From assembly GCA_047495785.1 (NCBI GenBank), contig JBLDXI010000024.1, forward strand, positions 2,914,001-2,978,000: DNA of 64,000 bases. Direction: 5' to 3'. The position numbers and the translations under genes were made by a program. Source of the DNA: Lepidodermella squamata. Taxonomy: Eukaryota > Animalia > Gastrotricha. Below, piece after piece: positions 12,441-58,765 of the stretch (positions are counted from its first letter, which is position 1; every line of letters begins with the position of its first letter). Under the pieces are notes generated by a model. The model saw only the letters and a program-made list of their open reading frames with translations. It made no database searches and was not told the origin of the DNA.

Positions 12441-13561
12441 ATGGAAAGCTTACAACAGTCTGGCAAAGCCAAAGACGTAAGATCGTGATACTTTGTACGA
12501 TTGAATGCATGCTAATGAATTCTTTAAAAACCCCTTAGATTCTCACGTGTGCGATTTGCTTGGAGTTTTTTGTACAGCCAAAACTTTTTCCAGGCTGTTC
12601 ACACACGTTCTGCGAGGGTTGCCTGGTTGAATTGCTAGGAAGTGGCGATAGGATTACGTGTCCTAGCTGTCGCAGAACGCATACGATGAGCAGCGCCGGA
12701 ATTCAAGGGTGGAAGAACAATTTCATAGCCGCTGAAATGGCGGATTTGATGCGAAGCCGACATCCAGCTATGCCAGCCGAAGAAGGGAAATCATTGGGGG
12801 ATTTCAGCTGCTCGCATCTAGCCTTGGGCGGGAAATCAACGCAGTGCTTACATTGTAACCAATTGTTTTGCGAACCTTGCTGCATTGTACACAAGGAGCA
12901 TATGAAACTGCAGCTTCATAAGATCAGTGAACAATGGCCGGAAACCCTCTCCAGTCCGTCAACCTCTCCCGAGTTCCTGAAAACTCACAACCAGATCTCG
13001 AACTGGTATGATGACCAGATGAAGAAGATTGACGAATCTATCGTCGCTGCGAGTGAGCAAATAATGAAAAGAATCGCCGGAAGCCTTCGCAAGAAATCCG
13101 AGGCGTTATTGATTCGGGCAGCCGAACTGAAGCAGAATCAACTGCAACAACTTCATGCAGCCGCTGATGAAGCCTGCAAAAGCGCCGAAGAAGCTAACAG
13201 CAAAATACATTCTATTTTGAAGTCATCAGTCTTACAGCTTAGCTGCGATGAAATAGCTGTTGTGTTATGCCAGGCGGAATCGTTTGATTTCAAAGTGAGT
13301 CTCAGGCGCAATTTGATGTCATCATTTAATGTTTCTATTTTAAAGCTGGTAAACCCAGATTGCAGCCGTGGCCTGGTTTTCTCAGGCGACCAGACTCGTA
13401 TCGACGATGCGCTGAGGCGATTCAACAACATCCTTTCATTAGGAAGTATTTCAATAACTGACGACTCTTTTCAGCCGGAATGCCACAATGTTGAAGAAAA
13501 GTCGACTCCGCCGGGTCCATCTGAAACGACTCGCTACGTCCCGCCACACCTTCGTAAATAA
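12441..13561 (+). CDS. TRIM-like RING/B-box/coiled-coil protein with C-terminal YVPPHLRK (R3, class B)
   Basis: Exons 12441-12476 (MESLQQSGKAKD), 12539-13294, 13346-13561. RING CAIC..CSHTFCEGC..CPSC. B-box-like CSH..CLHC..FCEPC..H. Confidence 0.85.
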
Positions 13562-13649
13562 TAATAATCTAATGCTAACAGTCTTGAATTTCATTATAGC
13601 TGATTTGAGCTAGAGTAATGAATAATAAACGTGAAACGTGCACGATAGC

Positions 13650-13830
13650 GGTGCTGACATAGAGGTGCTGAGATAAAATAACCTTGGGCTGTTGGAATAT
13701 ATTATTTAGAATCAAAGAGGGATTAATTTGTAGTTTTGAGAGGTTAACAGGGCATGAGATTTTTATAACGGCGACCATCATTTGGGATCATCATTGAGAG
13801 CCAGCAGCAGCCTGAAAAAATGAAAGACTT
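13650..13830 (+). pseudogene. Remnant promoter and exon 1 of an R9-like class B copy
   Basis: Matches 31000-31170, but the ATG is changed to TTG and the GT donor is lost. Confidence 0.6.
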
Positions 13831-14396
13831 CTTTTTGGTACATTCTCGGTGAGCCGCCGACCCCCTCACCTTCACTTTCTCCCCTGTTTCTTCTTCCACT
13901 TTCTACGTGTAAAAAACCCACTCAAAGATGTCTACTTTGTCTACTTGTGGCAAAATTTAAGATTTATTATTTGACGACCATCCACCCGAAGGTGCTCTCG
14001 GTCCGGATGTCAGAGTCACATAAAACATGATAAAATTGACGGCGCACAGATCGGCAGATAATATAGAATAATATTGTTTTCTATTTTTGATGAGAAGAAG
14101 TATTTTAATTCTTTTTTAAATTATGCAGCGAATGACTCGTCTGAAGTTAGCTATGTGATGTTTTCGCAGTCAGAATTGAGTTCGTTTGGTGATTCGGACA
14201 GGTTCAGAGGGCGACCAAGGCATTTGCTATAACAAACTATAAAACAAATGTAGTTACTTGTAAAGATGTCTGCTACCATGACCTTATCGCGAAAAGCCGT
14301 TACCTGATAAGGGTACAAGTCTCATTAGATATTCGCTACAATAAATTATATTCCAAACATAAAAAATAACAACTGCTGCTTTCTGAACCACATCAA

Positions 14397-15680
14397 ATGG
14401 CCAAATCGGAGCACAGCGATGACTTGAAAGCGGTAAGTCTTTGGCTTGCTTCAACGAAAATTGGATAATTATGATTATCATTTTTTAGGCTATAACGTGC
14501 GCAATATGTTTGGAATCCTATAAAAACCCGCGGATGATGCAGAACTGCTCTCACACTTTTTGTGAAGATTGTATAATCGGGCTGATTCCCAAAGTCACCC
14601 CTGCTCCGCATAACCCATTCGCACCTGCCTTGATACCACACCACACACAGCAACAGCAACAGCAACTGCAATTACCTGTCTTCATGCATATTCCACAGCA
14701 ACAGCAACAGCAACAGGAAATCATGTGCCCAGTATGCCGCTCGCCGAATGTTGTATTGGGCGGAGGCATCGCTACCTGGAAGAAAAACCATGTTGCTGCG
14801 GAAATAGCCGAGTTTTTTCGCCAACAAGAGTCCTTATTGGCTGCGAATCAAGCTAGTACTGGAATTACATCTGATGACCCTTTAATGAGCTTCAAATGCG
14901 AACATTTCATTGTTGTCAATCAACGAAAAACCTGCCCGCATTGCAAGCAGTCGTTTTGCCAATCTTGTCTATTTGTTCACATGGAAAGAATGAAACAGCG
15001 CATGAAACAAATTCGAGAAAAATGGGCGCAACAATTTCCGACTCGCTCATCTCTGGATGACTTGGACGAAGGTCTTGATTTTTTGGCTAAATCGCTCGAT
15101 CATCAAATCGCCTCGGCGGGAGTCGCGATATGTGAAACGACAAAGGACATTTTGCGAGCCGTTGAAAAGGTTCTCCAGGAGAAGGCTGACAGCCTGTCGG
15201 CTAAATCTTTGGAAATTAAAGAGAGAAAGCTTGACCCATTGCGCAGAGCTATCGAGCTGGCGTCGAGGCAAAGTACCACACCTGCTGATACCAACAGTCA
15301 AATCGATACTGTGATGGCTAACTCGGTTCTCGAGCACAGTTGCGATGGGATTGCTGAGCTTCTGATAAAAGTTGAACAAGCTGACGAACAGGTTTGAGAG
15401 GTTCAAAATTACTGTAATCCATGTTAAACAGCTGTTTCAGCTTGGCAGAATGGGCTTTATCCCAAATCCCGAAATATTGTTCGCTCCAGCAACTGAAACG
15501 ATCAAGCAATGTCTACGAGTGTTAACCGACACGTTGTCGCTTGGTCACATCGCCGTATTAGATAAAGAACCACAGCCACCACTGCATAATGATGTAGTGC
15601 ATAGGCGTCGAAAACATATTCCTATCATAGATCCAGGAACTGGTCTTGAAATCGGGCGTAATTTTATAAATTATAAATAA
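14397..15680 (+). CDS. Class A TRIM-like gene (R4) with poly-Q insertion inside the RING; propeller domain lost (truncated gene or pseudogene)
   Basis: Exons 14397-14432 (GT donor), 14489-15391, then 15441 to a stop at 15680. Only duplicated, broken pieces of the last propeller exons remain, at about 16210-16400 and 16566-16852. Confidence 0.7.
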
Positions 15681-16954
15681 TCATCCTATTGTGGTCAGGT
15701 GTCATAACGAACGTCGACTTCAACGAAAACTTGCTTGCAAACTCGAGTGGCACGAGCCAAACTTTGCACTTCCGCATGTTGCCAACATCGCTTGTAGTGA
15801 ACTATGTTTAACGAACGTTTCGCTGAACTGAACGATTCTGGGTGGTTTGGCGCCAGCTTTAAGCGTGATATTCACTATTCACATATTTTATATTGAACTT
15901 ATGTCCGACGTGCGGTGACAAGTGAGACGTGGCAAACGATTTCCAAGCAATTTCGGCCAGCTATTTTTCACTAGGCGTCTGAAAAGGCAACAGCTGACGC
16001 ATTCTAATCGAACGTCGAAATTGCTTGAAACCAAATTTTCGAATGACTTCGAAGCGATAGTGCCGAAATTCTCAGTTGATATAGCACAGAACGCAAATAT
16101 GGGGTTTCCGCTCAAATCTTGAAACCGTTGAGGTTTCGGTATTGGGACTTTTCAAACGATAAAACGAGATGATTAGATTATATTAGATTAAAGCGCTGAT
16201 ATACCTCCATTGAAGATTCATGCAGCAATAGAAATTACGGACGGAGGAGCCGGCATTCAAGTTAGTGTGAAATTTATGGATTGTGAATTTTCAAGTATTT
16301 TCCTGATAATTTTTTCCGTTAAATTGTGCCGTGTCAGCTTGGATGAACAACCACCCACACTTGAGCAGAGCCAAGCACTCGCACCATCAAGTTATTTTCA
16401 TTGATTTCATTGCTTGGCGTATACTGCTTGCTAATGGGACGTTACTAAAAAATGTCATTGTGTTTGAAATATTTCATATGATAATAAATTGGGACGGGTA
16501 TTCCCAGTCCGGTGTTTGCACTGCAGAACAACGCCGAACATAACGCAGATTTCCATCTATGCTTTATCGAGGATTCATGCGGCAGTAGAATTTTCATGAC
16601 GGCAGGAGTAGCCGGCATTAATATTAAAGTAAAATCTGTAATTGTTCAAGTATTTTACTGAATTTTTCATTTATGGTGTGCTCTGTCAGCTCAGACGAAC
16701 AGCTTCCGACTCCTGAGCTGGGCCACGAAATAACAGCGAGCGAATTTTCAACCTCAGCAATAGATGGGCTGGCGAGGTGGTTTCTCGGTAAATGACATCG
16801 CATTCTTGAGCCAAGCACTCGCAAAATCAAGCTCATTTCAGTGATGAATTAAAATGTTGCCTGGAGTCTACTGAGAGCATGCAAATAATACCGTAGCTGC
16901 TCAAACGGTTGACTTGATTCGCAGCCGATCTCTACCAGCAGCTTTTCAGGGAAT

Positions 16955-17270
16955 CAAGACGATCCCTTGAACAATTTCATCTGCTCGCACCTCGTCTTCG
17001 GTGGGGAATCACGAGCGGTTTGCCCGCATTGCGAGAAATCTTGCTTATTCGTTCATATGGAGCGTATGAAACAACATCGAATTCAAGCTATTCGCGAAAA
17101 ACTAGGCAAATCTTTTAAAAAGTCGTATAACACTCAAACAATAGCCAAGTATGATACCCAGTTTTGCAGAGCGTTACTGAAGAAATAGCCTCGGCAAGGG
17201 ACCAAATGATTAGAAGAATTTTTGGAATTCTGAACAAGAAATCGGCAACATTGTGAAGCCGACATTGCGT
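16955..17270 (+). pseudogene. Degraded B-box/coiled-coil remnant of a TRIM-like copy
   Basis: FICSHLVFGGESRAVCPHCEKSCLFVHMERMKQ..IREK, then stops and frameshifts. Confidence 0.65.
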
Positions 17271-17851
17271 CTCAAGAAAAATCAGAATATCAAATCAGCG
17301 TCGTTCTTGCAGCAAAACCGGCTCATTTTTCGCCTACTGTCCTCATTTACCTAACAACCCACGAATATAAAAATTCAGCCTGTAATACCTATTCCTGCAG
17401 GCTGCTCTATTGTTCAGGAAACAGTTTGCACCCATTGCAGGAAATCGTTCTGCAAATCTTTCATGCAGACCCAACAACACTGAGAAGACAGCAATTTTCG
17501 AGACCCCAACTTAAACAGAGACATCTTTGAAAAAACAGAGAGTAACTTAAATTCTGGTGTAAACTCCATTGCTGATTCATATTCCATATCCTTATCGCCC
17601 CATACAGAACGCAAAACGGTGCACGAAAAGCGGCGAGATATGACAAGCTTGGACTGTGAAAGTGTATATTTAGAATCCCAAGAGGAATCATCTTATTTTT
17701 GGTTTGAGATTTAAAAGGGCATGAGGCTTTTCACAGCCACCCACATATCGGCTCATCATGGAAAGCTTACAACAGTCTGGCAAAGCCAAAGAAGTAAGAT
17801 TGTGATACTTCCTACGATTTAATACACACTACATAGTTACATTTTAAAATA

Positions 17852-17967
17852 CAGGGCGTTCGCGTAATAATACTCTTCTAAAAATAGCTTTGCTACTTTT
17901 TGCATGCATTTTAGCTTTATTGTAGCTATTTTTAGCTCGCCCAGAGTATTATTACGCGAACGCCCTG
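17852..17967. mobile_element. 116-bp Tc1/mariner/pogo-type MITE
   Basis: TIR CAGGGCGTTCGCGTAATAATACTC / GAGTATTATTACGCGAACGCCCTG, flanked by TA on both sides. Confidence 0.8.
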
Positions 17968-17969
17968 TA

Positions 17970-20478
17970 TAACACTGTGTCTATATTTTTAACCTTGAAA
18001 CACAAATATATATTTTTTCATACTTCAAATATAGATTTGAATATGAACTATATTTCTGATCTATATCTGAAATATAGATTCATGTGTATCTATATTTTTG
18101 ACCTGGAAAATCTATATTTGTATGATATAACATGAGTAGGAATCTATATTTGAGAGAAGCACGAAATATAGATCGAGTAAAACGAATGAAACGAGTGAAA
18201 TCGAGGCGGAACGAGCCGGTAGGCGAGTGGAGACGAGATTTCACGAGGTGAATGAGTTTTACGAGATCTATACGAGTGCTTCACGAAAATATAGGTTTCT
18301 ACGAATGTTGTATCGTAAAATATTACACGGTGTCTATATTTTTCGCAACGCAGTAGTAATAGAAAATAAAAAATCCACCTTAAAATTTCACCTAAAAATG
18401 GCTTTATTCTCATTCTCGCTCATTTTTTCTCATTCGTTCGAATTTCGTCTCGTTTTGAAAGTCGATTTTCTGTCCGACCCTATGCTCGAATTTCACGAAC
18501 AAATGCTCCCGGAATTCTGCTCAGATTGGCAATGCGCTGCATTCGAAGCGAATGGTTCGAAACCCACCAACCCTGAAAGCTGCTTCTTTCGAAATCAACG
18601 TTGGCGAAACTTTCCGCCTTTGCTTCTGAAGAAACTGGTTCGATTTGAACGACACGCTTGGATCCGATCAAAGAAGCTCAGCGCAGTCCGTCGAAATTGC
18701 ATCTCTGGTTGTTTAAAATGGCTCAGTTTCGGACAAGCGCATCGCAATGGTGTTTGGTACGTGGATGCTTTCAACGCGATTGAATCGGAACTGTCGCTGA
18801 CAACGCTGCAAGTTGGGGGCGAAATGCTGTCGGATTTCCTGGATCTTCTGCGCAGCGTTCCCGGTGCTTTCGGAGGCGACTTGCTCACCGAATCTGTTCG
18901 AGGATCTTCTGCACGAGCCGACCCACGAAACGCTGCCGAATTCATGAAAAGTGGGGACGAAATGCTGCCCGATTTTCTGGATTTTCGGAGCAATTCTGTT
19001 GCCTACGACGGATTTTTGCTTGCCGAATGAAAGCCTGCCAAGCTGCCTCCGTCAAAATTATTCTCAATATTGAATTTCTCTACTTTCTTTCATAATAAAT
19101 TGCGTTGCGAAAACTATATTCCAGTGTTTTCCGTTAGAATGAGCTGTTTCAAGACCTCGGGAACCTTTGGTAGGGTTGAAAATGGGCGTTCTATATTCGA
19201 AATATAGAATTACCAAGTCGAAAATATAGATCAACTGAATCTATATTTCAGATATAGAACAGAAATATAGTTCATATTCAAATCTATATTTGAGATATGA
19301 AAAAATATAGATTTGTGTTTCAAGGTTAAAAATATAGACACAGTGTTATATTTTGAATATAGATGCCCATTTCCAAGCCCAATACTTCCGAGGTCTTGAA
19401 ACAGCTAATTCTAGCTGAAAAACACAGGGATAGAGTTTTCGCAACGCAATTTATTATGAAAGAAAATGGAGAAATTCAATTTTGAGAATAATTTAGACGG
19501 GGACAGCTTGGCAGGCGGGCTGCAAAATTGGCCGTAGGAACCAGAATTTCTCACAAAACTCCGGAAAATCGGGCAGCATTTCGTCCCCGCTGTGCATGAA
19601 TTCGCAGCGATTCGTGGGTCGGATCGCGCAGAAGATCATCGAACAGGTACGGTCAGCAAGTCGTCTCCTTAGATCGATAGAACGCGCCGGGAACACTGAG
19701 CAGAAAATCCAGTAAGTCGGACAGCATTTTGACCCCAATTCGCAGAAATCACCACCTTGAAACTTGATTGAACTTGGAACACTCTGCCGGCGACAGTTCC
19801 GGTTCGATCACGTTGAAAACATCGACGTACCAAGCACCGTTGCGACGCGCTTATCCAAAACTGAGCCATTTTCAACAACCGGAATGAAATTCCGACGGAC
19901 TGCTTGACCTTCTTTCATCGCCACCAAACGTGTCGTTCAAATCGAACCAGTTTCTTCGGATTGTAAAGGCGCATGGTTTTTGCGAACGTTGATTTCGAAG
20001 GAACCAGGTTTCAGGGTTGATGGTTTATCGAACCATTCGGCTTCAATTGCGGCAGCTTTGCCAATCGGAGCAGAATTCTTGGAGCATTTGTTCGTGAAAT
20101 TCGAGCAGAAATCCGGTCGGACAGAAAATCGACTTTCAAAACGAGACGAAATTCGAACGAATGAGAAAAATAAGCGAGAATGAATAGAAAGCCATTTTTC
20201 AATGAAATTTCAAGTTGGATTTTTATTATTTATTATTTTGCGTTGCGAAAAATATAGACACGTGTAATATTTTACGATACAACATTCGTAGAAACCTATA
20301 TTTTCGTGAAGCACTCGTATAGATCTCGTAAAACTCATTCACCTCGTGAAATCTCGTCTCCACTCGCCTACCGGCTCGTTCCGCCTCGATTTCACTCGTT
20401 CCATTCGTTTCACTCGATCTATATTTCGTGCTTCACTCAAATATAGATTCCTACTCATGTTATATCATACAAATATAG
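17970..20478. repeat. Composite inverted-repeat structure A-B-A'-B' rich in CTATATTT/AAATATAG
   Basis: About 17970-18115 is inverted at about 19205-19348. About 18112-19207 is inverted at about 19348-20478. Confidence 0.85.
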
Positions 20479-21610
20479 AATTGTCCTTAAAAATATACGT
20501 CGAGTAGCTTTGACAATTCGATATTTTACGGTATGACATTCGTAAATCGTTCAGATATAAACTGTTTACTCATGTTATACCATACAAATATACCTTAGAT
20601 TCTCACGTGTGCGATTTGCTTGGGGTATTTTGTACAACCCAAACATTTTCCAGGCTGCTTGCATACATTCTGCGAGGGCTGCCTGGTCCAATTACTAGGA
20701 AGTGGCAATAATATTGCTTGTCCCAGCTGTCGCAAAACTCAATTTGTAAGCGGCTCCGGAATTAAAGGGTGGAAGACCGATTTAATCGCCGCTGAAATGG
20801 TGGATTTGATGCAAAGCTGTTTTTCAGCGATGCCAGCCAAGAAAGGGAATTCGCTGGGGGATTTCAGCTGCGCCCATCTTGCTTTGGGTGGGAAATCTAC
20901 GCAGTGCTTACACAGTAGCCAATCATTTTGTGAACTTTGCTGCATTGTGCACAATGAGCATATGGAAGTGCAGCTTCAGAAAATTAGTGAACAATGGGCA
21001 AAAACCTTAGGCAGTTCGCTTCTGCTGAGTTCTTGGAAACTCGAAGTCGGATATCGGCCTGGTATGATGACCAAATGAAGAAGATGGATGAATCTATCGC
21101 CGCTGTGAGTGAGCAAATCATGGAAAGAATCGCCGGAAACTTTCGCAAGCAATCCGAGGCGTCATTGTCCCAGGCGGCCGAGCAAAAGCTAAAACAACTG
21201 GAACAGTTTCATGCGGCCGCTGATGAAGCCTACAAAAGTTCCGAAGAAACCAACAGCAAAATACAATCCATTCTAAAGTCATCCGTCTTACATCTGAGCT
21301 GCGATGAAATTGCTGATGCGTTATGCCAGGTAGAATCGTTTGTGTTGTGTCTTGTCCAATCCAGGTCAGATTATTGAGGTCAGGTAGGAAAAGCACATGG
21401 CCGCTACTCACCACGTGGCCGCTGGGCTGGTCGAGCTTCGCCATTATGGTCATTATGTTTTATGGCTGTGTTTAATAAATTGCTTTTCTTGATCATATGG
21501 ATTTAATGTTGATACATTGATAGGGGATCTTTTACGATTAAATAAAATACAAGAAGATTGTCAATCGGTCTTTTGTTAAACACAACAAATTGGCGACGCA
21601 GTAAAAGCAA

Positions 21611-22660
21611 ATGGCGGATCCAGTAGCAACAACGGCAACCGACACAATGGCTCAATTGCTGCAACAGCTGGTCACTTTGAATATCGCTACTCAATCGACG
21701 CTGAACAATCACAGCGAAGCTATTCAAAAGCTGCTAGCGGAAAATGAAACGAAAACGACGCGAGAGTTCGCTGGTTTCAATCCACAAACCGAATTGTGGG
21801 AAGACTACAAGGGCAGGTTCGACACATACGCCCGAGCTCATGGTAAAACCAGTACGAAGGCAGCATATTTCCTGGCTTGTCAAACGGATGCCATGTATAA
21901 AGAGCTGCAACTACATGCAAAACAGCAACATGACAAAGAAATCAACAACTTGAAGTACGAAGAAATTTGTGCATACATGGCGTCGCAATACGACCCGAAA
22001 AAGTTTGTCGTCCGCGAACGGCACAAATTTTGGTCCAACATGGGTCGGAAGACAAATGAATCAATTCAACAACTGGTAAGCCGAATCCGCGCCGACGCTG
22101 CTACCTGCGATTTTCCATCTATCAAAGATCCCCTCGACGAAGCGTTAAGAACTCGGTTTATTTGCTCAATCAAAAACGAAGCAGTCTTGCGAGCCTGTTA
22201 CAAAATCAAAGACGACGAACTTACCTTCGCCAAAGCAGTGGAAGTGGCTATCGAAACCGAAGAGGCGGCTAAAACAGCGAAAGAAACGGTCGCTCCGGCG
22301 CCTCAGCCGGTTCATCAATTGTCTGCGAAACCTAAGAAGTTCGGTAATAACTCGAAATTTCAACGAAAGAATTTCCAAAAATCGAATCAACAATCATCGC
22401 AACCACCAGCAAACCAGCCCTCCCAGCTGCCTTGCGGATCTTGCGGTAAATCAGGTCATCCTCGTAAAAGCTGTTTCTATCGCGACTACGACTGCAATGC
22501 ATGCGGTAAACATGGTCACATCGCAGCAGCTTGTCGCTCAAACAACGCCGAAACTAAACCGGTCAAGGTTATCACGCTTCATAATCACAAATCGATCGCA
22601 CTGCATAAAGTTACTGATTCGACTGAAGTTGTCTACGAAGATATTCATTTTTGGTCTTAA
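21611..22660 (+). CDS. Gypsy Gag with two CCHC zinc knuckles
   Basis: W..Y..RF motif, ERHKF..Q/R..ESIQQLVSRIRADAATCDF, CGSCGKSGHPRKSC and CNACGKHGHIAAAC. Confidence 0.9.
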   Translation: MADPVATTATDTMAQLLQQLVTLNIATQSTLNNHSEAIQKLLAENETKTTREFAGFNPQTELWEDYKGRFDTYARAHGKTSTKAAYFLACQTDAMYKELQLHAKQQHDKEINNLKYEEICAYMASQYDPKKFVVRERHKFWSNMGRKTNESIQQLVSRIRADAATCDFPSIKDPLDEALRTRFICSIKNEAVLRACYKIKDDELTFAKAVEVAIETEEAAKTAKETVAPAPQPVHQLSAKPKKFGNNSKFQRKNFQKSNQQSSQPPANQPSQLPCGSCGKSGHPRKSCFYRDYDCNACGKHGHIAAACRSNNAETKPVKVITLHNHKSIALHKVTDSTEVVYEDIHFWS

Positions 22661-24146
22661 AAAATTTCATAATTTTTTGTTTGGTAGACACTTTTCGGTC
22701 GTCACTGATCACAAACCACTGTTGGCTTTGTTCAACCCGAAGAAAGGTGTGCAGCAAATGGCTGCAAAACGACTAGCCAGGTGGTGTTGGATGCTTCAAC
22801 AGTACGACTACGAAATCGAATTCAGGCGAACCGAAGACCATGGCAACGCCGATGCTCTGAGTCGTTTACCGGTCGGTGAAGATCCCAAATTCGATGGGGA
22901 GGAAAGTGCAGATGATGTTGATATGGTTCTGACAATCAAAACAATCGGGTACCAATCAACGAATGAAGCAAACGCTATGACTCGAGAGTCGGTTCGTGAC
23001 CCAATCGTGTCCAAAGCCGCGATGTTTATTCGAAATGGTTGGCCTAATCAACTGGATGAACAAGAGCTGCGAGATCTTAAAAAACTCTCACCGTATTTGT
23101 CAATTAACGGACCTTGTGTATTTTATGGAAACAGGTTGCTTATTCCCAAGAATTTGCGTGAAGATGTTCTGAAAGTCGTTCACCTGGGACATTTCGGTAT
23201 CCAGCGAATGAAGCAACTGGCTCGAACGGCGGTCTACTGGCCGGGTATCGATGATGCGATAAATAACCTGGCTAAAACCTGTTCAAGCTGCAACGAACAT
23301 CAAAACAACCCGATCAAAGCACCTGTTCACCCTTGGTCACTTCCGGAACAACCTTGGACTCGAGTTCATGTCGATCATGCGATAAATTTCCTCGAGTCGA
23401 ATTGGCTGATCTTGGTGGATTCAACATCGCGCTATCCTTGCATTCACCCCACCAAATCACTGACGGCCAAAACGACTTTGGAATTGCTCGATGAAGATTT
23501 CGCTCATTTCGGTTTTCCTCAGGTGCTGGTTACCGATAATTTTCCCATGTTTCATTCAGAAGAATTTCAACGGGGTTGTGCGGATCGGGGAATCATCCAC
23601 TTGACTGGCGCACCGTATAAGCCGGAAACTAACGGACTAGCTGAACGATTTGTTGAGACCTTCAAAAACTCAATGAAAAAGTCATCGTTAACGAAAGCGG
23701 ATGCCTTGAACGAATTCCTGATGGTCTATCGTCGTACTCCTTTGGCGAATGGCTATTCACCAAGCGAATTACTCAACGGTCGCCAAATTCATGCAAAAAT
23801 TGATACCCTGGTGTTAAACCCGATTTTGAATGACCAAAAGCGACAAGCGACTCGAACCGAAACGGCGACTACGGCAACCACCTTTACTACTGGTGATGAA
23901 GTCTGGGCTCGTGTCCTGGGCGGTCGTCTCGCGAATCGTGATCCAAAATGGGTAGCTGCGGTTGTCGAACAAGTTTGTGGACCCCGACGTTATCAAATTC
24001 GAGTTCTATCTGATGATTTACTTTGGACTCGTCACGTCGATCAACTTTGTCCACGTTTTGGCGATGCTCCACCTGAACCTCCGGTGATCAATCCAACTCC
24101 TGAAATTGGCTTACGTAGAAGTCCGCGCTTACAAGTTCGTCTGTGA
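22646..24146 (+). CDS. Gypsy Pol remnant: C-terminal part of RNase H + complete integrase
   Basis: IFGLKKFHNFLFGRHFSVVTDHKPL..NADALSRLP; HHCC (H.GH..CSSC); DDE motifs VHVDH / TDN / NGLAERF. Different frame from gag. Confidence 0.85.
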
Positions 24147-24789
24147 CGTCTTTGCTGCGGGTCTCAAAGACTGGTGAGGAGGTGTTGTGTCTTGTCCAAT
24201 CCAGGTCAGATTATTGAGGTCAAGTAGGAAAAGCACATGGCCGCTACTCACCACGTGGCCGCTGGGCTGGTCGAGCTTCGCCATTATGGTCATTATGTTT
24301 TATGGCTGTGTTTAATAAATTGCTTTTCTTGATCATATGGATTTAATGTTGATATATTGATAGGGGATCTTTTACGATTAAATAAAATACAAGAAGATTG
24401 TCAATCGGTCTTTTGTTAAACACAACAGTTTGATTTCAAAGTGAGTGCTCAGCGCAATTTGATACCATCATTTAATGTTTCTATTTTACAGCTGGTAAAC
24501 CCAGATTGCAGCCGTGGCCTGGATATATCAGTCGATCAGACTCGTATCGACGATGCGATTAGGCGGGTCAGCAAGATCCTTTCGTTATCATCATTTCTAA
24601 ACATACAATTAAAAGAAGAATAACCTGAACCATCAATATCAGCTCGAACATCTTTAAAAAAATAATGTATGACAATAGATGGGTCGAAATTTCTTACCTC
24701 ATCAGTGAGGCGTCAGCTCTAGTACCTGTTTTATATGTTGCTAAGGATACATATTACTCTAGGCGAAGCTTACACAATAACATAATAAC

Positions 24790-25282
24790 ATAATAAGAAA
24801 CCGCTTATTTAAGGGGGATTTTTTTATTTTTACAGTGAGCACCGAAGGTGCGAAAACCTTGCCCCGCCGTGAAACGCGAGCGCAGCGAGCATCACGGGGC
24901 AAGGTTTTCGTCCGAGCGAAGCGAGGGGACGCTGATTTCATCGAGCGAAGCGAGAAAAAGCACTTAAAACTCTTCGAACGAACCGAGATCACTTTTCTTG
25001 TTTCAGTATGAAATTCGTTCAAAAATGCCGTTTTCAACGTACATTTTTAAGGTTGATTTTTTAAAGTCGCATTTCACCCACGAAATTAACCTATTATGTC
25101 ACATTTTTCCATTTAAATTGCAGTTTTATCGGGAACGGTGAACGCTTCGCCTTGAGTAATATGTCTAATAAGGCCCACGGTACGGCTAGTTTCTCGGAAA
25201 AATCGCATAATAAGACTCGGCTTCGCCTCGCCTTATTATGTGAGTTTTTCCTCGAAACTAGCCTTCCCTAGGGCCTTATTTA
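24790..25282. mobile_element. Non-autonomous hairpin-rich insertion (Helitron/Helentron- or Crypton-like, unclassified)
   Basis: Stem 24851-24866 / 24895-24910. GCACCGAAGGTGC and GCGAAGC mini-hairpins. A 114-bp imperfect palindrome at 25167-25280 with a GGCTTCGCC apex. Interrupts the last exon of R5. Confidence 0.5.
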
Positions 25283-25964
25283 TACATAAAATTAATTTGA
25301 TCATTTGCTATACACATAGTCGCCTTGGCGGTGTTTGCAAATAAAATAAAATAAATGATGAGTTGACGTGAGTTAGGAAGTATTTCGATAACTGAGGACT
25401 CAGCCGAAAAGTGACCAGTTGAGGAAAAGTCGACTGAAACGAGCTCATCTGAAAGGACTCGCTCCGCCCCACACCTTCGTAGATAATAATAACCAAACGC
25501 CAAAAATATTGAATTTCAGATTTCAACCTCCAGCTGATTCGAGCTGGAACCGCGATCAGATATAGGCCTGGTATGATGTTTTCTCGCATGGTTCCCCAGC
25601 TCTCTCCGCTTCTCTAAATACTATTCACAGTCAATTGTGTCAATGGTACCCCGCCCTTCCTCTGAGCGATGACCTCGAGAGCGTCAGCCTGTCGCCCAGC
25701 CCCCACTCGTTCACCCTTCGCACAGCTGAATCGCCGGCTTCTTCTTGGTCCCCTTCCAACCTTTTTCAGTTAGCTCTCCCCACTTTCTTCCCCTTTTTGC
25801 TTCCACCTTCTCCGAGTAAAAAAACCCACCCAACAGGGATAAAGATGTCTACCACGACCTTATCGCTAAAAGCAGCTACCGGATAAGGGCACAAGCCTCA
25901 TTAGATAGTCACTAAAATAAATTATATTCCAATAATAAGAAGTGCTGCCTTTGAACCACATCAA

Positions 25965-28322
25965 ATGGCCAAATCGGAATACAAGGACGATTTGAAAGCG
26001 GCAAGTCTTTAGCGTGCTTAAAATTGGCAACTTATGATTTTCATTCTTCAGGCTATAACGTGCGCAATTTGTTTGGGGGCCTTCAAAAACCCAAAGATCA
26101 TGCAGAACTGCCCTCACACTTTTTGCGAGGGTTGTATCATCGAGCTGATCCCTAAAGTCGTCCCTCCTCCACATCAGCAGCAAATCCTGTGCCCAGCTTG
26201 TCGTTCGCCGAGTGTTGTTTTGGGCGGAGGCATCGCGACATGGAAGAAAAATCATGTTGCCGCGGAAATCGCCGAATTGTATAGCAAACAAGAGTCCTTA
26301 TTGGCAAATCAAGCTAGTACTGGTATGGCATCTGCCGACCCTTTAATGAGCTTCAAATGCGAACATTTCATTGCGGTCAATCAACGAAAAACCTGCCCGC
26401 ATTGCAAGCATTCGTTTTGCCAGTCTTGTCTATTCGTTCACATGGAAAAAATGAAACAGCGCATGAAAGCAATTCGGGAAAAATGGGCGCGACAATTTCC
26501 GACTCGCTCATCTCTGGATGACTTGACCGACGGTCTTGATTTTTTGGCTAAATCCCTCGATCATCAAATCGCCTCGGCGGGGGTCGCAATAAGTGAAACG
26601 GCAAAGGAAATTCTGCGAGCCGTTGAAAAGGTTCTCCTGGAGAAGGGCGACAGCTTATCGGCTAAATCCCTGGAAATTAAAGAGAGAAAGCTTCACCCAT
26701 TGCGCAGGGCTATCGAGCTGGCGTCGAGGCAAAGTACCATACCCGCTGATACCAACAGTCAAATCGATAGCGTGATGGCTAACTCGGTTCTCGAGCACAG
26801 CTGTGAGGGGATCGCTGAGCTTCTGATCAAAGTTGAACAAGCTGATGAACAGGTTTGAGAGGCTCTAAACTGCTGGAAACGCTGTAATAACGAGACCTAT
26901 TTTAGCTTTCAAGAACGGGCTTCATTCCAAATCCCGAAATAATTTTCGCTCCAGCAATAGACTCGATCAAGGAATGTCTTCGAGTTTTAACAGCGACTAT
27001 GTCACTTGGGGATATAGACGTAGTCGATAGAGAACCACAACCCCTTCCGGGTAGCGCCTTAGAGCGACAAATACGTCGCATGGTGATTGTTGAGAATCCT
27101 AGCCCTGCAAAGCCATACAACTTTATTAAGTCCGTTGAACTCGCGTCAACAATTACCTCGGTTAAAGCGATGACTTACTTGGCGCCACTGAAAGCTCTAC
27201 TTATTGCAGCAAACTGCGGATATCAGGTGAGGTGCTACATGTGTCTATTTGAGACCAAAATCGGACGAAAACATTTTTTCCGGCAATTTAACAAGCATTT
27301 TTCTCCACTGTTCTTGTGAAAAGTCACGAGTCAAAATCTATCCGACTGGCGCCTTCAAAGTTTCAAATGAATACCGTTTATTACGTATTACGTCAATATG
27401 GTTAATCAACCCTCGAAATCAAAACAATTACATTATAATCTAGTCAATTCGTCTTGCAGCAGCACTGAAAAAGTTTATTTCTTGATTTCAGGTGGTTCCA
27501 CTTGAATCTGATGCAGGACCCTCCGTGAAAGCATTGGATACGAGGCATTCAAGTCCGCAATATATGGCTTCTCTCGACTGTCGAGTTTTCATCGTAGATA
27601 AGAGACAGGAGAATGAAATGCTCCTATTCGCATTCGACGTTGTAAGGTTGAATCGCAACGGCAATCAGTCATTCGGAGTAAAAAAATCAGTCGTAGCCAT
27701 GAGAGATAGGGAGATTAAGGGCTTAGCCATTTCACCTGGTCGGAAGGAAATGTATACAATCGCGGGATTGCAACTATTCGCCATTTCAACCGACAGCTAT
27801 GCTGTAACGCCATTGCTACGGTTGCCTGATTCGGATTACGACGCAGTTGTTGGCCTGAGTGCAAGGCTGGGATTCCTATTTAGCAAGCTATCTGGGGGAA
27901 GGCCGAAACCCTATCTTGTTGCAAAACAATGGAGTCCAAATGAACTACAATTTGCATCAAGTGCTGCTGAGCGGGAAATCCTAATCGAATATAACGCAGC
28001 TTTACATCCATGCTATATCGAAGATTCATATAACAACAGAATTTACATTGCAGAAGGAGGAGCCGCCATTAAAATAAAGGTGAAATTTATGAATTTTCAA
28101 TTTCTGAGTAATTTCCTGAATTTTTCCGATAAGGTGTGCATTGCTAGCTCAGACGAACGACTACCACCTCTTGAGCAGTGCCGCGAAATCACAGCGAGTG
28201 AATTTTCAACCTCAGCTATGACAGGCTGGCAAGGTGGTTACTCGGAAAGTAACACGGAAGTTAACATTGCATTTTTCGAGCCAAGCACTCGCAACATCAA
28301 GATAATTTCTTTGACGAATTGA
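25965..28322 (+). CDS. TRIM-like RING/B-box/coiled-coil + beta-propeller-like protein (R6, class A)
   Basis: Exons 25965-26000 (GC donor), 26052-26852, 26906-27226, 27492-28079, 28134-28322. Same structure as R2. Confidence 0.85.
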
Positions 28323-28879
28323 AATATTGCCCGGATTCTATTGAAAGCTTGCAATGGGACATTTTACTGACACTTTGATTTTGAGTTTGAAATATTTCAT
28401 TCGCTAATAAATTTTGACAGGTCTACATGAAATTACTCAAGCATTCCGGAGCTTGTATTGTTAACAAATGTTATCCATTAGGGACGGTTCTGGCCTTTGA
28501 TGCTGTGCTTTGCGTCGGGACACTTGGTTTATTTCTAGGCTGTTCATGCGTTTTGTGACGTATGATAATGAAACTAATCTCAAATTTCCCATTACAGTTA
28601 CGAGGCAAGGTTTCATGCGAACTATTGTTGTCAGAAAAGAAAACCCACGACTGAGATAAATTAATATCGTATCCTCTGCTTTACGATTTAAACTGAGCCT
28701 TTGGAACGCGCGAGTAACATGCAGCAAGCTGATCAAGTGAAAGAAGTAAGTCTCTTCGCGATAGTGAAGTCTGTACCATGACATTATGAATTTCCAGATT
28801 CTTACATGCCCAATATGCCTGGACTTTTTCGTAAATCCAAAACACTTCCCAAGTTGCTTGCATAAATTCTGTGAAGGTT

Positions 28880-29399
28880 GCTTGGTACGACTGCTGGGCA
28901 GTTGTCCCAGAATTGAATGCCCAACTTGCTGAACAGTCTGTATCAAGCGAGATTCTCGTATTGATCGATGGAAAAATAACACCGATGGAAATTAGTGCGA
29001 AAATCGATGCTTTCCTGAAAACGTCTGTTCTTGATCATACCTGTACAGAAGTGTCTCAAATTTTTCGAGAAGCTGAACACGCCGAAAAGCTGGTAAGTCC
29101 TTGATAGTGGCGACTCACGCTATGAACAATTTTTCTAGGTCGAAAGTGCAAGCCGCGATCAATCAAAGAGAATAGCTTTTTCTGCGACCAAGAACAGCAT
29201 CGATGATGTATTGAAACAAATCAGAGATTCCATTTCGCTGGGGGACATTGTTTTATCGGATGAAGTTTCTAAACCAAGCCCCGACACTGATTCTGAGCCC
29301 GCGCCCGCTGGTGTCTATGTACCACGGCATCTCCACAAGAGGATGCAATACGATCGGATCGTGACCGCATGGCGAGAAAGAAGTCATGTTTCTGACTGA
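28880..29399 (+). pseudogene. 3' half of a further TRIM-like copy (R7) ending in YVPRHLHKR
   Basis: KIDAFLKTSVLDHTCTEVSQIFREAEHAEKL, intron, then ..ISLGDIVL..GVYVPRHLH. The RING-containing half is absent. Confidence 0.65.
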
Positions 29400-29814
29400 T
29401 GTTCTGAAGCTAAGCATTCTTTGCTGAGCAAAATGGCCTAAAACTAACCAAAATGCCGTAGTATGCATATGAACTATTGAAGTCAAAGCCAATAAAGATG
29501 CATCTCGTAAGAAATTTCCTTTGTTTTCGATGCAAATATCATCGACCCTGCCCAGAAGAAGTTTCAGTTTCGCCGAATGATTACGCCATTTTTCAACCGA
29601 TTCCACTCTCGATACTTGGTTTCACGATAAGCCATATCGTCATTTTTCACCGCAGGACAAAAAAAGGTTAACAAAATATGCACGACAAGCATTGTGATAA
29701 GATAACATTCGGCTGTGACAGTGTATATTTAGAATCAAAGAGGAATCATCTTATAGGTTTGAGACGTTAAAAGGGCGTGAGACAGTAACACGGCCAATTA
29801 CATTACGGTTCGCC

Positions 29815-30917
29815 ATGGAAAGCTTACATCAGTCAGGCAAAGCCAAAGACGTAAGATTGTGCTTTTTTGAACGATTTATTACAACATCTAGCTACGTAAA
29901 TTGTTTACTTTACCTCAGATTCTAACCTGTCCGTATTGCTTGGATTATTTTGAACGGCCGAAACTTTTTCCAGGCTGTTCGCACACGTTCTGCGAGGGTT
30001 GCCTACTTGAATTGCTAGGAAGTGACGATAGGATTAAGTGTCCAACCTGCCGCAAAGTGCACACGGTAAGCAGCCGCGGTATTCAAGGGTGGAAGAACAA
30101 TTTCATCGTCGCTGATATGGTGGATTTGATGCGCAGTCGGCCTCCTGCGATGTCAGCTGAAGAAGGAAATTCACCGGCGGATTTCAGCTGTTCGCATCGT
30201 GAATTGGGTGGAAAATTAACACAATGCTTCCACTGTGGGAAATCCTTCTGCGAACCATGCTGCATTGTTCATAAGGAGCAAATGAAACTGGAGCTTCTTA
30301 CAATTAGTAAAAAATGGGCCGGTTCGGCAGCTTCTCCCGAAAATCGGATCTCGGCCTGGTATGACAAACAGCTGAAGAAAATTGATGAAGATATCGTCGC
30401 TGCGAGTAAGCAAATCATGAAAGCAATCACCAAAAGAGTTCGCAAGAAATCCAAGGATTTGTTGTTTCGGGCAGTCGAACTAAAGCAAAAGCAACTTGAA
30501 CAGCTTCATGCAGCCACTGATGAAGTCCACAAAAAAGCCGAGGCAACAAATAACAAAATGTGTTCTGTCTTAGAAAAATCAGCTTCAGAGCTTAGCTGCG
30601 AAGAAATTGCCGATGTGCTATGTCATGCGCAAGCGCTCGATTTCAAGGTGAGTCTGGGGCGACTTTCTTTTTCATCATTTAATGATTCCATTTTAAAGCT
30701 AGAGAATTCAGATTGCAGCCGCGGCCTGGGTTTTTCTGTCGACCAGGCTAACATCGACGATATTTTGACACGATTGAACGAAAGCCTCACAATAGGACGT
30801 ATTACACTAACTGGGGATTATTTTCAGCTGGAATGTGACGACGCTGAGGAAAATTCGACTCAACCGAGTTCATCTGAAACGGCTCTCTACGTCCCGCCAC
30901 ACCGCCGTAAAAAATGA
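29815..30917 (+). CDS. Class B TRIM-like protein (R8) ending YVPPHRRKK
   Basis: Exons 29815-29850, 29919-30647, 30699-30917. RING and B-box-like motifs are intact. Confidence 0.85.
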
Positions 30918-31134
30918 TAATTCAATGACAAATGCCTTGAATTTTAGCTTTGAAAATAGCGGCCGATTTGGGCTTTTAAAAGAATAATAAGATAATTATA
31001 TTAGCGAGATAAGATAATTGAACCGTGGGAGTGTATATATTTAAAATCGAAGAGGGATTATCATGCAGTTTTGAGAAGTTAGAAGAGCATGCGATTGTTA
31101 TAACGGCGACTAACATTTGGGATCATCATGGAGA

Positions 31135-32256
31135 ATGGAGAGCCAACAGCAGCCTGACAAAGTGAAAGACGTAAGATTGTGATATTTTTTAGGAGTTAAT
31201 GCATACTAACTAAATATTTATAAAATATCTTAAGATTCTAACTTGTGCGATCTGCTTGGAGTGTTTTGTACAACTCAAACATTTTCCAGGCTGTTTGCAT
31301 ACGTTCTGCGAGGGCTGCCTGATCCTATTACTTGGAAGTGGCGACATGATTAAGTGTACAAAGTGCCGCAGAGAGCACACGGTAGGCACCTCCGGAATTC
31401 AAGGGTGGAAGAACAATTTACTCGTCGCTGAAATGGCGGATTTGATGCGCAATCGATCTGCAGCTATGGCCACCGAAGAAAGGCCTTCGCTGGCAAATTT
31501 CAGCTGCTCGCATCTGATTTTGGGTGACGATTCCTGTCAGTGCTTACACTGTGACAAATTGTTCTGCAAACCTTGCAGCATTGTGCACGATGAGCTTATG
31601 AAATTGCAGCTTCAAAAAGTTCGAAGGAAATGGGCCAAAACTCTCTGCAGTCCATCAGCTTCACCGGAGTTCCTGAAAACCCGTGATCAGATATCGGTCT
31701 GGTATGATGAACAGATAAAGAAGATGGGTGAAGATATCGCTGAAGCTAATGATCAAATTATTAAGAGAATTGCCGGAAGCCTTCGCAAGAAATCCGAGGC
31801 GTTATTGTCAGAAGCGGCCGAGCTAAAGCAAACCCAATTGGACCAGCTTTATGCAGCCGCTGATGAAGTCTACAATAAAGCCGAGCATACTAATAGCGAA
31901 ATATTTTCCATACTGAAAATATCAGTTTTAGAGCCTGACAGCTTCGAAATAGCTGATTTATTGTGCGATGCAGAATCTTTAGATTTCAAGGTGAGCACGA
32001 GGCGCTTATTTATTACGTCATATAAAACTCCAATTTTTAGCTGGAAAATGGTGGTTGCAACCCTGGGCTAGTTTTCACATTCGACCAGGCGAATATCGAC
32101 AACGCGCTGAGACGATTCAATAATTTCCTCACAATAGGAAGTATTTCGATTACTGGGGACGCATTTCAGCTGAAATGTGACGATGTTAAGGAAACATCGA
32201 ATCCAACTGAAGTCAGCGGCACGCCTCGTTATGTCCCTCCACATCTTCGTAAGTAA
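31135..32256 (+). CDS. Class B TRIM-like protein (R9) ending YVPPHLRK
   Basis: Exons 31135-31170, 31235-31990, 32041-32256. Removing the 50-nt intron restores the frame homologous to R3 and R8. Confidence 0.85.
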
Positions 32257-32441: not shown

Positions 32442-33462
32442 TTACGAAGCAAAACCATCGGCTGGCTCTCTGCAATGAAAGCTCGATTGAAGAAAGAATC
32501 GCCTCATTCCGGCCACTTTGATACTGCCAGATCGACAAGGTAGAATGAGTCGAATCGCTTTCGTATGCCGACTGACTGCAAGATACCGAAGTCCTGACGG
32601 GTAATTTCCGACAAAGAAAGTTCGCCCGACATGCTCGCTATTACGTCGGTCGATGACCTGTAGTTCTTCATCGATCAGTATCACTTCACAAGGCTCCAAA
32701 TCGTGCTTCGTAACGTGAACTACAAGAGGGACGTTCAATACATCAATCACCTATGAAATGAAACAAAATTAGATTTGAAACTGTCATATAAGGGATTACC
32801 TCTTCAAAATCTGGTAGAATCTTTGATAAATTGAAGACGGTCCAATTATTCGAAGGGTTATTGCCGAACCAGTTGCGATGGAAACTGTACTCTGGCAAAT
32901 TTTTCACTGAAGAAGCACTGCCGTAGCGTCCGAGTAAAATTCGCCCGAAACCATAGCTGTAATTTCGAGCTTTGTTTTGCTTCGAATCGTATTGCAACAG
33001 GTCTTTCTTCATCTCCATCAAATGCTGCCGCCAGGCCGCATTTGTCGGCTCAGCGTCGTAGACAACTTGAAGCCCGTTCTTCGAAAATACAGACCTCGAG
33101 GCCTTGGCTAACGAATGCAAACGGGCTAGATTTTCCGGCCGAATTTCGAGGAAACAATCGACGCTTTCTCGGTCGAATTCCGAGCGTAGAAGATGCTCGA
33201 ACAAAACAAGGCTGTTGGTGATGAAGGCGTGCCAACTCCGGCTGACGAATGCGCATTGTCGGTAGAGATCGAACGGGTTTAGGAGTAAAAATATCCGTTG
33301 AACCAGCTCTCGCGGCAAAATATCGACGATTGACAATGCTTCATCTGGGCGGACTCGCTTTTCAATACTCGTCAAGTTAACTTCATCTTCTTGGTCGTCA
33401 AACGAACGCTTGCTCGCTAAATGTCTCTTGCTTGGGCTTTTTGTTAAGGCCATTGTCAACAT
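32442..33462 (-). CDS. F-box protein with divergent FBA-like C-terminal domain
   Basis: Exons 33462-32800 and 32750-32442. F-box IVDILPRELVQRIFLLLNPFDLYRQCAFVSRSW. GRTFFVGNYPSGLRYL resembles the FBXO2/6-family FBA motif (F.NY.PGVRY). Confidence 0.8.
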
Positions 33463-56926: not shown

Positions 56927-57200
56927 TACACTAAATTAAATAAAGTTTATTGCTATCTAACGAAAAGTTTATAAATTGTTGTGAATGTGCCAGCGAATGA
57001 AAACTACTTGAAAAAAAATAAGGCGATTCATCGAACAACTTTCATCGAGGAAACTTACAACTGAATATATGATGAAATTTACCTAAATTCGGACATCAGC
57101 TTGAGATCCTTATAGTTCAGTTCCTTGAAATTTGAATTTGAAATTGCTTAGGGTGGGGACGGAGAAGCTAGCTGACGTATAAACTATAAACCTTTTTCAG

Positions 57201-58280: not shown

Positions 58281-58765
58281 CCAATTGTCGTGCCTGATCA
58301 CTAGAACGTCAGTTATTCCTCTGAATTTTGAATCATACGCATCAAGTTATTTGGTTCTATCGTAACATATGCAAGTCGTTCTGCCACCAATCCCGTGATA
58401 TCCTACCTAGCATTTCGCGATAACGCCAACGCTGATAACGAATAATTGATAGAGTTTCAGTTAAATTATTGTACAGTGTTGTCTGAAACTACTGCAAGGG
58501 GCGGAGTTCATTTTTTATCTTTTCAGCGAGGAGCTTAGAAACATTGAAGAGTTTCATGAATTGCGCGCTTGTGTACGCGCTTTTGGCTATTTGAACACGC
58601 GCTGCAAAACCGACTAAGACACCTCATATAAAGGCCGATCCCGGCCGATTCCTTAGATCTGTATCTCATTGAGGACTTTTTTACCATGACAAGGAAATTC
58701 AGGCACAGGAAATGCAGCAAATAAAAAATGACTGAAGAATTACAGTCTGGAACTACATCCAGAAG

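Follow-up and report, generated by a model that had tools for sequence, protein, structure and literature searches.

A DDX3/Ded1-type peptide at the C-terminus of domain-less TRIM-like proteins in the gastrotrich Lepidodermella squamata

Introduction

Can a RING-type ubiquitin ligase that has no folded recognition domain be directed to its targets by the same short peptide that marks a subfamily of RNA helicases? The question is raised by a 64,000-nt stretch of the genome of the gastrotrich Lepidodermella squamata (GenBank assembly GCA_047495785.1, contig JBLDXI010000024.1, positions 2,914,001 to 2,978,000 of the forward strand), which we refer to as the window and whose positions are counted from its first nucleotide. 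Three TRIM-like genes in the window, called here class B genes R1, R8 and R9, end in the peptide YVPPHLR or, in the case of R8, in YVPPHRR. A sequence-only reading of the window had pointed to this ending and to its likeness to the helicases DDX3X and Ded1, and we followed it up with gene models, RNA reads, selection analysis, structure prediction and database searches.

The peptides YIPPHLR (DDX3X residues 38-44) and YVPPHLR (Ded1 residues 21-27 and LAF-1 residues 22-28) mark the DDX3 subfamily (PMC11251518, PMC11917139). The class B heptapeptide is identical to Ded1 21-27 and to the LAF-1 motif, and is one residue (valine for isoleucine) away from DDX3X 38-44 (PMC7343385, PMC11917139, PMC11251518). 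According to the SLiMPrints study, conserved human matches to YxPPx[ILMVA][KR] occur almost only in translation-linked, otherwise non-homologous proteins, namely eIF2A, DDX3X/Y, eIF3g, NOM1, TDRD3 and CDV3; in TDRD3 the match is located at the extreme C-terminus, ...FYQPPRARN (PMC3510515). In the literature that we searched, no TRIM or RING ligase is linked to this motif, which is written YxPPxΦ[KR] below.

Class B genes and their tail peptide

The intact class B genes have three exons each and are listed here together with their tails.

12441..13561, + strand: class B gene R1, 335 amino acids; exons 12441-12476, 12539-13294 and 13346-13561, introns of 62 and 51 nt; based on the reading frame, GT..AG borders, homology to R8 and R9, a Pfam RING match and an AlphaFold2 model
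13532..13561, + strand: tail of R1, RYVPPHLRK and stop, from the sequence
29815..30917, + strand: class B gene R8, 327 amino acids; exons 29815-29850, 29919-30647 and 30699-30917; based on a cDNA contig and a Pfam RING match
30885..30917, + strand: tail of R8, LYVPPHRRKK and stop, from the sequence
31135..32256, + strand: class B gene R9, 335 amino acids; exons 31135-31170, 31235-31990 and 32041-32256; based on cDNA joints 31171-31234 and 31991-32040 and on a spliced frame that is continuous to the motif
32227..32256, + strand: tail of R9, RYVPPHLRK and stop in different synonymous codons, from the sequence

From the tyrosine to the stop the tails occupy 13535-13561, 30888-30917 and 32230-32256, exactly as the sequence-only reading had placed them. 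The second intron measures 51 nt in both R1 and R8 and 50 nt in R9, and because of this 50-nt intron R9 is in frame only when spliced. The residue preceding YVPPH is arginine in two copies (R1 and R9) and leucine in R8. R1 and R9 (YVPPHLR) match the regular expression Y-x-P-P-x-[ILMVA]-[KR], whereas R8 (YVPPHRR) fails at the Φ position. A degenerate DNA pattern for YVPPH finds three exact matches and one match with a single mismatch, all in the class B family, against 0.37 expected, and none of 100 shuffles reached four matches.

After the coiled coil, class B proteins continue with one short helix, a 17-residue acidic/Ser/Pro linker and the tail. In the AlphaFold2 model of a class B protein (67 sequences, mean predicted local distance difference test score, pLDDT, of 80) the helix at residues 285-300 reaches a pLDDT of ∼58, and residues 299-332 stay below 50. 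Pfam finds no match in class B proteins past residue 250. The proteins have no folded C-terminal domain, as had been proposed, and the tail is their only recognisable C-terminal element. The established consensus patterns of SH3 class I and II, WW (PPxY), GYF (PPGΦ), EVH1, nuclear localisation signals of the PY type, PDZ and C-end degrons do not fit RYVPPHLRK.

Transcription and the end of the protein

Splicing was examined in X1, a public RNA run with SMART-type cDNA adapter ends and GT..AG joints, and in X2, a DNA run without such joints. X1 shows the class B introns 30648-30698 (51 nt, R8), 31171-31234 and 31991-32040 (both R9), and the 30648-30698 joint is missing from X2. Since X1 carries exactly these introns and X2 none of them, R8 and R9 are transcribed and spliced as modelled. 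An exact cDNA contig covers R8 at 30348-30591. An R1-like cDNA end at 29936 was recovered as a loose end, and we tentatively regard R1 as expressed as well. A second version of R8, with ∼6% differing positions at 30341-30808, occurs in the DNA run as well as in the cDNA run; the contig from which the 51-nt intron is removed belongs to this second version, which may represent an allele of R8 or an additional paralog from beyond the window. Many joints seen only in X1 connect opposite strands ∼100 nt apart and were taken as artefacts of library preparation or assembly.

The sequence-only reading had cautioned that the arginine codon of the motif might contain a splice donor. If the GT in CGT-AAR were used in this way, the last residues of the protein would change. 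The C|GTAAGT of R9 is a good donor, and the CGT is kept in four copies, but the donors of R1 (GTAAAT) and R8 (GTAAAA) would be weak, and past the nearest AG each of the three genes has a frame for only a very short peptide, unrelated to those of the other two. No joint at the motif is found among the RNA joints listed, five others being listed in the same 6 kb, and no GT..AG joint is listed where the RNA depth drops from 12 to 0.45, directly past the R8 stop. AATAAA-like signals are located 60-100 nt 3' of each class B stop, the R9 start codon follows the R8 stop after only ∼215 nt, and hypothetical exons downstream of the stops are not conserved in frame among the three genes. The caution is thereby largely answered: use of the donor appears very unlikely, and, with no splice at the motif in the cDNA contigs, class B proteins most likely do terminate at the stop codon that follows the tail.

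Selection on the tail

Selection was analysed in the three intact paralogs of this one genome, and conservation is therefore measured among paralogs only. Gene-wide synonymous divergence (dS) between class B copies is 0.54-0.81 and omega, the ratio of nonsynonymous to synonymous divergence (dN/dS), is 0.26-0.37, which indicates that the copies are old and constrained. The eight tail codons of R1 (12441) and R9 (31135) carry four synonymous and no nonsynonymous differences (TAC/TAT, CCG/CCT, CAC/CAT and AAA/AAG). A use of different synonymous codons had been noticed in the sequence-only reading, for a pair written as R3 and R9. Between R8 and R9 there are five synonymous differences and one nonsynonymous difference. 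In both pairs dN of the tail is below dS (Fisher p ∼0.001), and nonsynonymous change is less frequent in the tail than in the adjoining 17-residue linker (Fisher p=0.002 for R1-R9 and 0.005 for R8-R9), where the proportion of nonsynonymous differences (pN) is 0.37-0.44 in comparisons of R9 with R1 and R8.

Seven of the eight tail columns are invariant in the three intact paralogs, compared with 4 of 17 in the linker. The probability of seven invariant columns in eight is 2.5e-4 at the linker rate and 0.03 at the whole-protein rate. A score of at least 7 is reached by 12 of 329 eight-residue windows, and the others that were inspected are in the RING and the second zinc finger. The linker keeps its length of 17 residues and its acidic/Ser/Thr/Pro character while its sequence drifts. 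These comparisons bear out the earlier impression of a motif held beside a drifting linker and indicate purifying selection on the tail but not on the linker. The motif codons of R1 and R8 are identical, and their local dS is 0.19-0.29 against 0.54 gene-wide; because of this identity the selection signal rests on the comparisons with R9.

Pseudogene relics and the age of the tail

In addition to the three intact genes, class B includes two pseudogenes.

20590..25487, + strand: class B pseudogene R4; based on tblastn, the sequence and Pfam matches in the inserted element
28795..29400, + strand: divergent class B pseudogene R7; based on tblastn, the sequence and alignment

The N-terminal part of R4 (20590-21341) contains a frame break, and its exon 3 begins at 24492. 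R4 is interrupted by a truncated Ty3/gypsy-type element (21611-24146) and by additional inserted DNA. According to Pfam the element carries a gag-like open reading frame with a CCHC knuckle, an RNase H and an integrase; a protease and a reverse transcriptase core were not found in 21611-24146. A second insertion of ∼770 nt is located between exon 3 and the relic tail. In R7 a stop interrupts the RING, the zinc finger is missing, little is left of the coiled coil, and RNA depth is near nil. Exon 3 of R7 is ∼33% identical to that of R1 (tblastn), and its linker has no recognisable similarity. Both decayed tails that the sequence-only reading had noticed are real, but the tail of R4, at 25464-25487, reads SAPHLRR and stop as a result of a 3-nt loss, and not SAPPHLRR, and the tail of R7 (YVPRHLH, 29316-29336) has lost its stop and reads on as YVPRHLHKRMQ.... 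The survival of YVPRHLH in the strongly diverged R7 implies that the tail predates the R7 split and is older than the class B radiation in the window.

The selection results and the relics bear on two further explanations of the tail. The first is that it has no special function: it would descend from the end of a class A-like gene that had been truncated (class A being a paralogous group of the same array, described below), kept similar by ancestry or gene conversion, and its identity with DDX3 would be a coincidence. In its favour, the carriers are all paralogs from a single array of 20 kb, and carriers elsewhere were found neither among the 150 best profile matches nor in a search with the tail only. 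The identical motif codons and low local dS of R1 and R8 would also fit, and MAFFT sets the tail opposite '...AKPYNFIK' of class A, a hint of descent from the start of the lost domain. Against this, the R9 tail differs from those of R1 and R8 by 4-5 synonymous and only 0-1 amino-acid changes beside a linker pN of 0.37-0.44, the deeply diverged R7 lineage retains five of the seven residues, and by chance a known motif would be matched exactly over seven residues ∼6e-10 times per position, a rough estimate from average residue frequencies. We consider a functionless tail unlikely.

The second explanation is that the tail is a decoy, by which ligases that mimic DDX3 trap pathogen proteins aimed at the DDX3 N-terminus, in a diversifying TRIM array of the immune type. 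A tandem lineage-specific expansion with pseudogenes and transposon insertions would suit such a role, but selection on class B is purifying rather than diversifying (omega 0.26-0.37), the tail is the most constant part, and no pathogen link of any kind was seen. Such a decoy is highly improbable.

A TRIM-like scaffold without a folded C-terminal domain

Pfam matches zf-RING_UBOX and zf-C3HC4 above cut-offs in R1 and R8; R9 falls below the thresholds and keeps all ligands. The eight zinc ligands of the RING are invariant in nine paralogs, as are a proline and an arginine by the last cysteine pair, and the alignment shows C41, C44 and R45 of the RING to be invariant. The top Foldseek match of the RING is the human TRIM2 RING (38% identity, E 1.6e-7), followed by the RINGs of TRIM25, TRIM23 and TRIM21 solved with E2~ubiquitin; E values for TRIM2, TRIM25 and TRIM21 range from 1e-7 to 1e-4.

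The second zinc finger of class B has no match to Pfam zf-B_box, and only ANCHR-like_BBOX was found, with E=0.05, below the cut-off. Its block C-x-H-x9-10-C-x-H-C-x4-C-x2-C-x2-H-x-E aligns column by column with the Pfam-positive B-boxes of three relatives (P0003, P0007 and P0025), and in the AlphaFold2 model the finger is compact with pLDDT above 90. The model has helices at 112-137, 144-228 and 236-271 with pLDDT 92-97; being a model of R1, it includes 17 intron-encoded residues (253-269), a helix extension that is to be disregarded. Structures of the KAP1 tripartite motif align with it over ∼260 columns, with E ∼3e-3 and a low TM-score (0.20 by query length and 0.16 by target length).

An exhaustive profile search of 1.84 billion representative proteins gave 10,027 matches, all remote, the best with E values of 1e-33 to 1e-15. 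TRIM-NHL-type proteins match the family profile over ∼250 residues with E values of 1e-20 to 1e-28, most of the ten relatives that we inspected combine a RING-(B-box)-coiled coil arrangement with filamin or NHL repeats, and the top named match is an uncharacterised starfish protein. A word-indexed protein search with R8 returned nothing at E<=1e-3, a blank made weak by the word and length limits of the search. The ESM Atlas feature search recovered generic RING/B-box clusters only, and phmmer with the 27-residue tail as a query found nothing among PDB chains. An internal YQPPHLR in the TRIM-NHL relative P0016 was treated as chance. The description of class B as TRIM-like thus holds for the TRIM-NHL profile matches and the TRIM2-like RING, and does not extend to a B-box recognised by Pfam.

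Many TRIM-NHL proteins are translational regulators. The TRIM-NHL proteins (the TRIM2/3/32/71, Brat and LIN-41 group) are the closest detectable relatives of class B over the RING, zinc finger and coiled coil, but class B has no NHL or filamin domain. TRIM proteins composed of a RING, B-box and coiled coil (RBCC) whose C-terminus has no classified domain make up a recognised subfamily, C-V (PMC10445537), and the earlier statement that no described TRIM class has this architecture does not hold. With C-V already accepted, only the tail is unusual and not the architecture. Class B resembles C-V members in its RING, second zinc finger and long coiled coil with no folded domain after them, and differs in a second finger that remains under the Pfam B-box thresholds, in its short length (327-335 residues), in the conserved linear motif at its end and in having no orthology to any named C-V member. 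On sequence grounds, class B is a TRIM-like RBCC protein of the domain-less kind represented by subfamily C-V.

Proposed function of the tail

A possible reading, which we hold tentatively and draw from analogy with DDX3X and Ded1, is that the class B tails act as a docking peptide that would bring a dimeric, domain-less RBCC E3 ligase to initiating messenger ribonucleoproteins (mRNPs). The targeting element would be the C-terminal short linear motif RYVPPH[LR]RK, presented on the 17-residue disordered linker. The coiled coil probably forms an antiparallel dimer as in other TRIMs, which would give each ligase two tails. These would dock on the translation-initiation machinery as the same peptide does in DDX3X and Ded1, with eIF4A as the best-supported candidate receptor and eIF4E or a 40S complex as alternatives. 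Docking may bring E2~ubiquitin to components of the initiating mRNP, or compete with DDX3 for its site, or both. The stricter proposition, that the ligase family convergently gained the exact DDX3/Ded1 peptide as its sole targeting device, plugs into the DDX3 docking site on initiating ribosomal complexes and ubiquitinates whatever is located there or evicts DDX3, seems to us doubtful.

RNF4 is a small dimeric RING E3 ligase targeted only by short linear motifs in a disordered arm, and class B is likewise proposed to be a RING ligase targeted by a short linear motif; the SUMO-interaction motifs of RNF4 are N-terminal to its RING, and RNF4 has neither a B-box nor a coiled coil. Compared with the DDX3X/Ded1/LAF-1 motif (LIG_eIF4E_2 in ELM), the class B tail is identical (YVPPHLR, RYVPPHLR), and disordered and basic on both sides. 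It is located at the extreme C-terminus of a putative RING ligase instead of near the N-terminus of a DEAD-box helicase, shows no homology outside the motif, and in R8 has arginine for leucine at Φ. Like class B, the modular adaptor TDRD3 has a YxPPxx[KR] peptide at its extreme C-terminus (PMC3510515, PMC5506013). Its peptide is YQPPRAR against YVPPHLR in class B, and TDRD3, which lacks a RING, is equipped with OB, UBA and Tudor domains.

The receptor of the DDX3 motif was reportedly proposed by Shih et al. (2008) to be eIF4E, and the sequence-only reading had adopted this contact. Alanine mutation of DDX3X 38-44 abolishes co-purification with eIF4E, eIF4G, eIF4A and RPS11, and in nuclear magnetic resonance experiments a DDX3X 33-51 peptide leaves eIF4E unperturbed (PMC11251518). 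In yeast Ded1, residues 21-27 are determinants for eIF4A and for growth, while eIF4E requires residues 59-89 (PMC7343385). The identity of the peptide thus stands, and its contact with eIF4E is contested.

TDRD3 also points to another destination. The tail may dock on the eIF4A3-MAGOH-Y14 assembly of the exon junction complex (EJC), which would send the ligase to spliced, untranslated mRNPs and not to eIF4F. The C-terminus of TDRD3, ...FYQPPRARN, matches the same regular expression (PMC3510515), and the C-terminal end of TDRD3 is its EJC-binding motif (PMC5506013). EJC-binding motifs contact the RecA2 domain of eIF4A3 and MAGOH-RBM8A (Y14) (PMC9162471). In addition, eIF4A3 is paralogous to eIF4A, the mapped partner of the Ded1 motif, and the terminal position of the tail is closer to TDRD3 than to DDX3. 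On the other side, the coincidence of YQPPRAR with the EJC-binding motif of TDRD3 is only inferred, the H-L-R of the tail is shared with DDX3, Ded1 and NOM1 and not with TDRD3, and the peptides in the PDB have no sequence resemblance to the tail (phmmer). Docking on the EJC is improbable on this balance.

A receptor may also be dispensable, if the tail works as a condensate 'sticker' that partitions the ligase into RNA granules of the DDX3/LAF-1 type through weak multivalent contacts. RYVPPHLR (LAF-1 residues 21-28) features in studies of the phase behaviour of the LAF-1 Arg-Gly-Gly (RGG) region (10.1101/2020.01.06.894576, 10.1101/2025.04.06.647444), and a ligase dimer would carry two tails. 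The class B linker, however, offers no RGG or aromatic-rich context, one motif per chain is a weak driver, and the strict keeping of seven of the eight residues suits a stereospecific site better. We regard a sticker as distinctly improbable.

Several points weigh against docking of class B ligases on the initiation machinery. The direct receptor of the motif is disputed even for DDX3X, with eIF4E, eIF4A and a 40S complex all under discussion, and mutation of the motif in eIF2A leaves eIF4E binding in place (PMC3510515). Seven residues can arise and persist for a different partner. Intact copies of the tail number only three, and the identical motif codons and low local dS of R1 and R8 make gene conversion between them possible. 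The cDNA contigs are compatible with a rare splice form at the motif. The motif ending is absent from the 150 best of the 10,027 profile matches, and a word-indexed search with the last 45 residues gave no candidate sharing three words, itself a weak blank; such blanks for tail carriers are weak because the L. squamata lineage is poorly represented in protein collections.

C-V TRIMs and RING ligases targeted by short linear motifs are already known, and what is new here is the combination of a putative domain-less RBCC ligase with a DDX3-type tail. The finding extends over eight residues in three paralogs of one non-model animal, and if binding fails, an ordinary domain-less TRIM-like gene cluster is left. 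The motif YxPPxΦ[KR] is conserved between Ded1 of yeast and DDX3X of humans and is found again in eIF2A, eIF3g, NOM1 and TDRD3. If class B tails do dock as proposed, they would support, independently of the known cases, the view of the YxPPxΦ[KR] peptide as a docking module that can be carried from protein to protein, and would offer a natural second bait for the YxPPxLR receptor. Docking would also point to control of initiation, or of DDX3 function, by ubiquitin, a new coupling of ubiquitination to translation initiation, and it would mean that lineage-specific TRIM expansions can replace a folded recognition domain by a short linear motif. The same array combines an all-beta domain in class A, the DDX3-type tail in class B and an acidic/hydrophobic tail in class D.

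Tandem array and neighbouring genes

The class B genes are part of a tandem array on the + strand, in which tblastn detects at least 11 related units across the window. The RING, the second zinc finger and a coiled coil of ∼130 residues are common to all units, and 36 columns of the array alignment are invariant, among them those of all RING ligands and of the C-H-C-HC-C-C-H block. According to the alignment, exon 3 opens in all classes with the same strand-helix module of ∼40 residues, and the sequences diverge after it; the classes differ only downstream of the coiled coil and this common start. In other TRIMs this place is taken by the linker helix, which folds back against the coiled coil.

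Class A units (8293, 14495 and 26034) and a related copy at 5149 have an all-beta region of ∼330 residues after the coiled coil. One of them was used for comparison with class B.

26034..28322, + strand: class A paralog; RING, zinc finger, coiled coil and first 40 residues of exon 3 as in class B, followed by an all-beta domain of ∼330 residues and no tail

Its introns 26853-26905, 27227-27491 and 28080-28133 are seen in the RNA run X1. The C-terminal region of classes A and C (∼330 residues; 26906-28322, 9162-10363 and 6375-6971) has no Pfam match. The AlphaFold2 model of the class A domain, built from three sequences, has a pLDDT of 42, too poor for fold comparison, and the ESM Atlas search with this domain yielded no more than vague hints of a beta-propeller-like fold. 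A divergent NHL-like propeller is suspected in this region solely because the nearest relatives are TRIM-NHL proteins. In the class A copy at 14495-15394 a Gln-rich insert of ∼33 residues separates the fourth zinc ligand of the RING from the fifth; of the all-beta domain downstream in this copy only fragments are left (16177-16849), and the copy may be decaying.

Class D units (57186 and 60129) carry an acidic/hydrophobic C-terminal tail. These paralogs, at 57186-58283 and 60129-61297, have the same RING, zinc finger, coiled coil and exon 3 start without a folded C-terminal domain, and share acidic/hydrophobic ends, ...EEIESDASFELVLASASDDDSDT and ...EEQIESDALFAMTLLALSDEE, each followed by a stop. 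The first of these tails (EEIESDASFELVLASASDDDSDT) resembles an LC3-interacting region, with acidic residues followed by F-x-x-V, and the second (EEQIESDALFAMTLLALSDEE) does not. In class D the common scaffold may thus carry a short-motif tail of a second kind.

A conserved TATA-like block, TATATTTAGAATCNAAGAGG, is located ∼90 nt 5' of class B start codons (29724-29743 and 31036-31055), with a variant at ∼12343. An extra copy of TATATTTAGAATCNAAGAGG at 13701-13720, just 3' of R1, is followed by a degenerate exon-1-like stretch that has lost its ATG. The copies of the block, including the one at 13701-13720, point to duplication of whole units with the promoter included.

Genes of other families adjoin the array. 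An F-box protein gene is its neighbour at 32743-33462 on the - strand. A single-exon gene at 35954-38248 (+) encodes a multi-pass membrane protein with an ANF_receptor domain that resembles class C G-protein-coupled receptors. Two tandem genes for DNA/RNA non-specific endonucleases (Endonuclease_NS) occupy 45346-47258, the first of them with a signal-peptide-like start, and a glycosyltransferase family 2 gene resembling polypeptide GalNAc-transferase is located at 47575-49139 (+).

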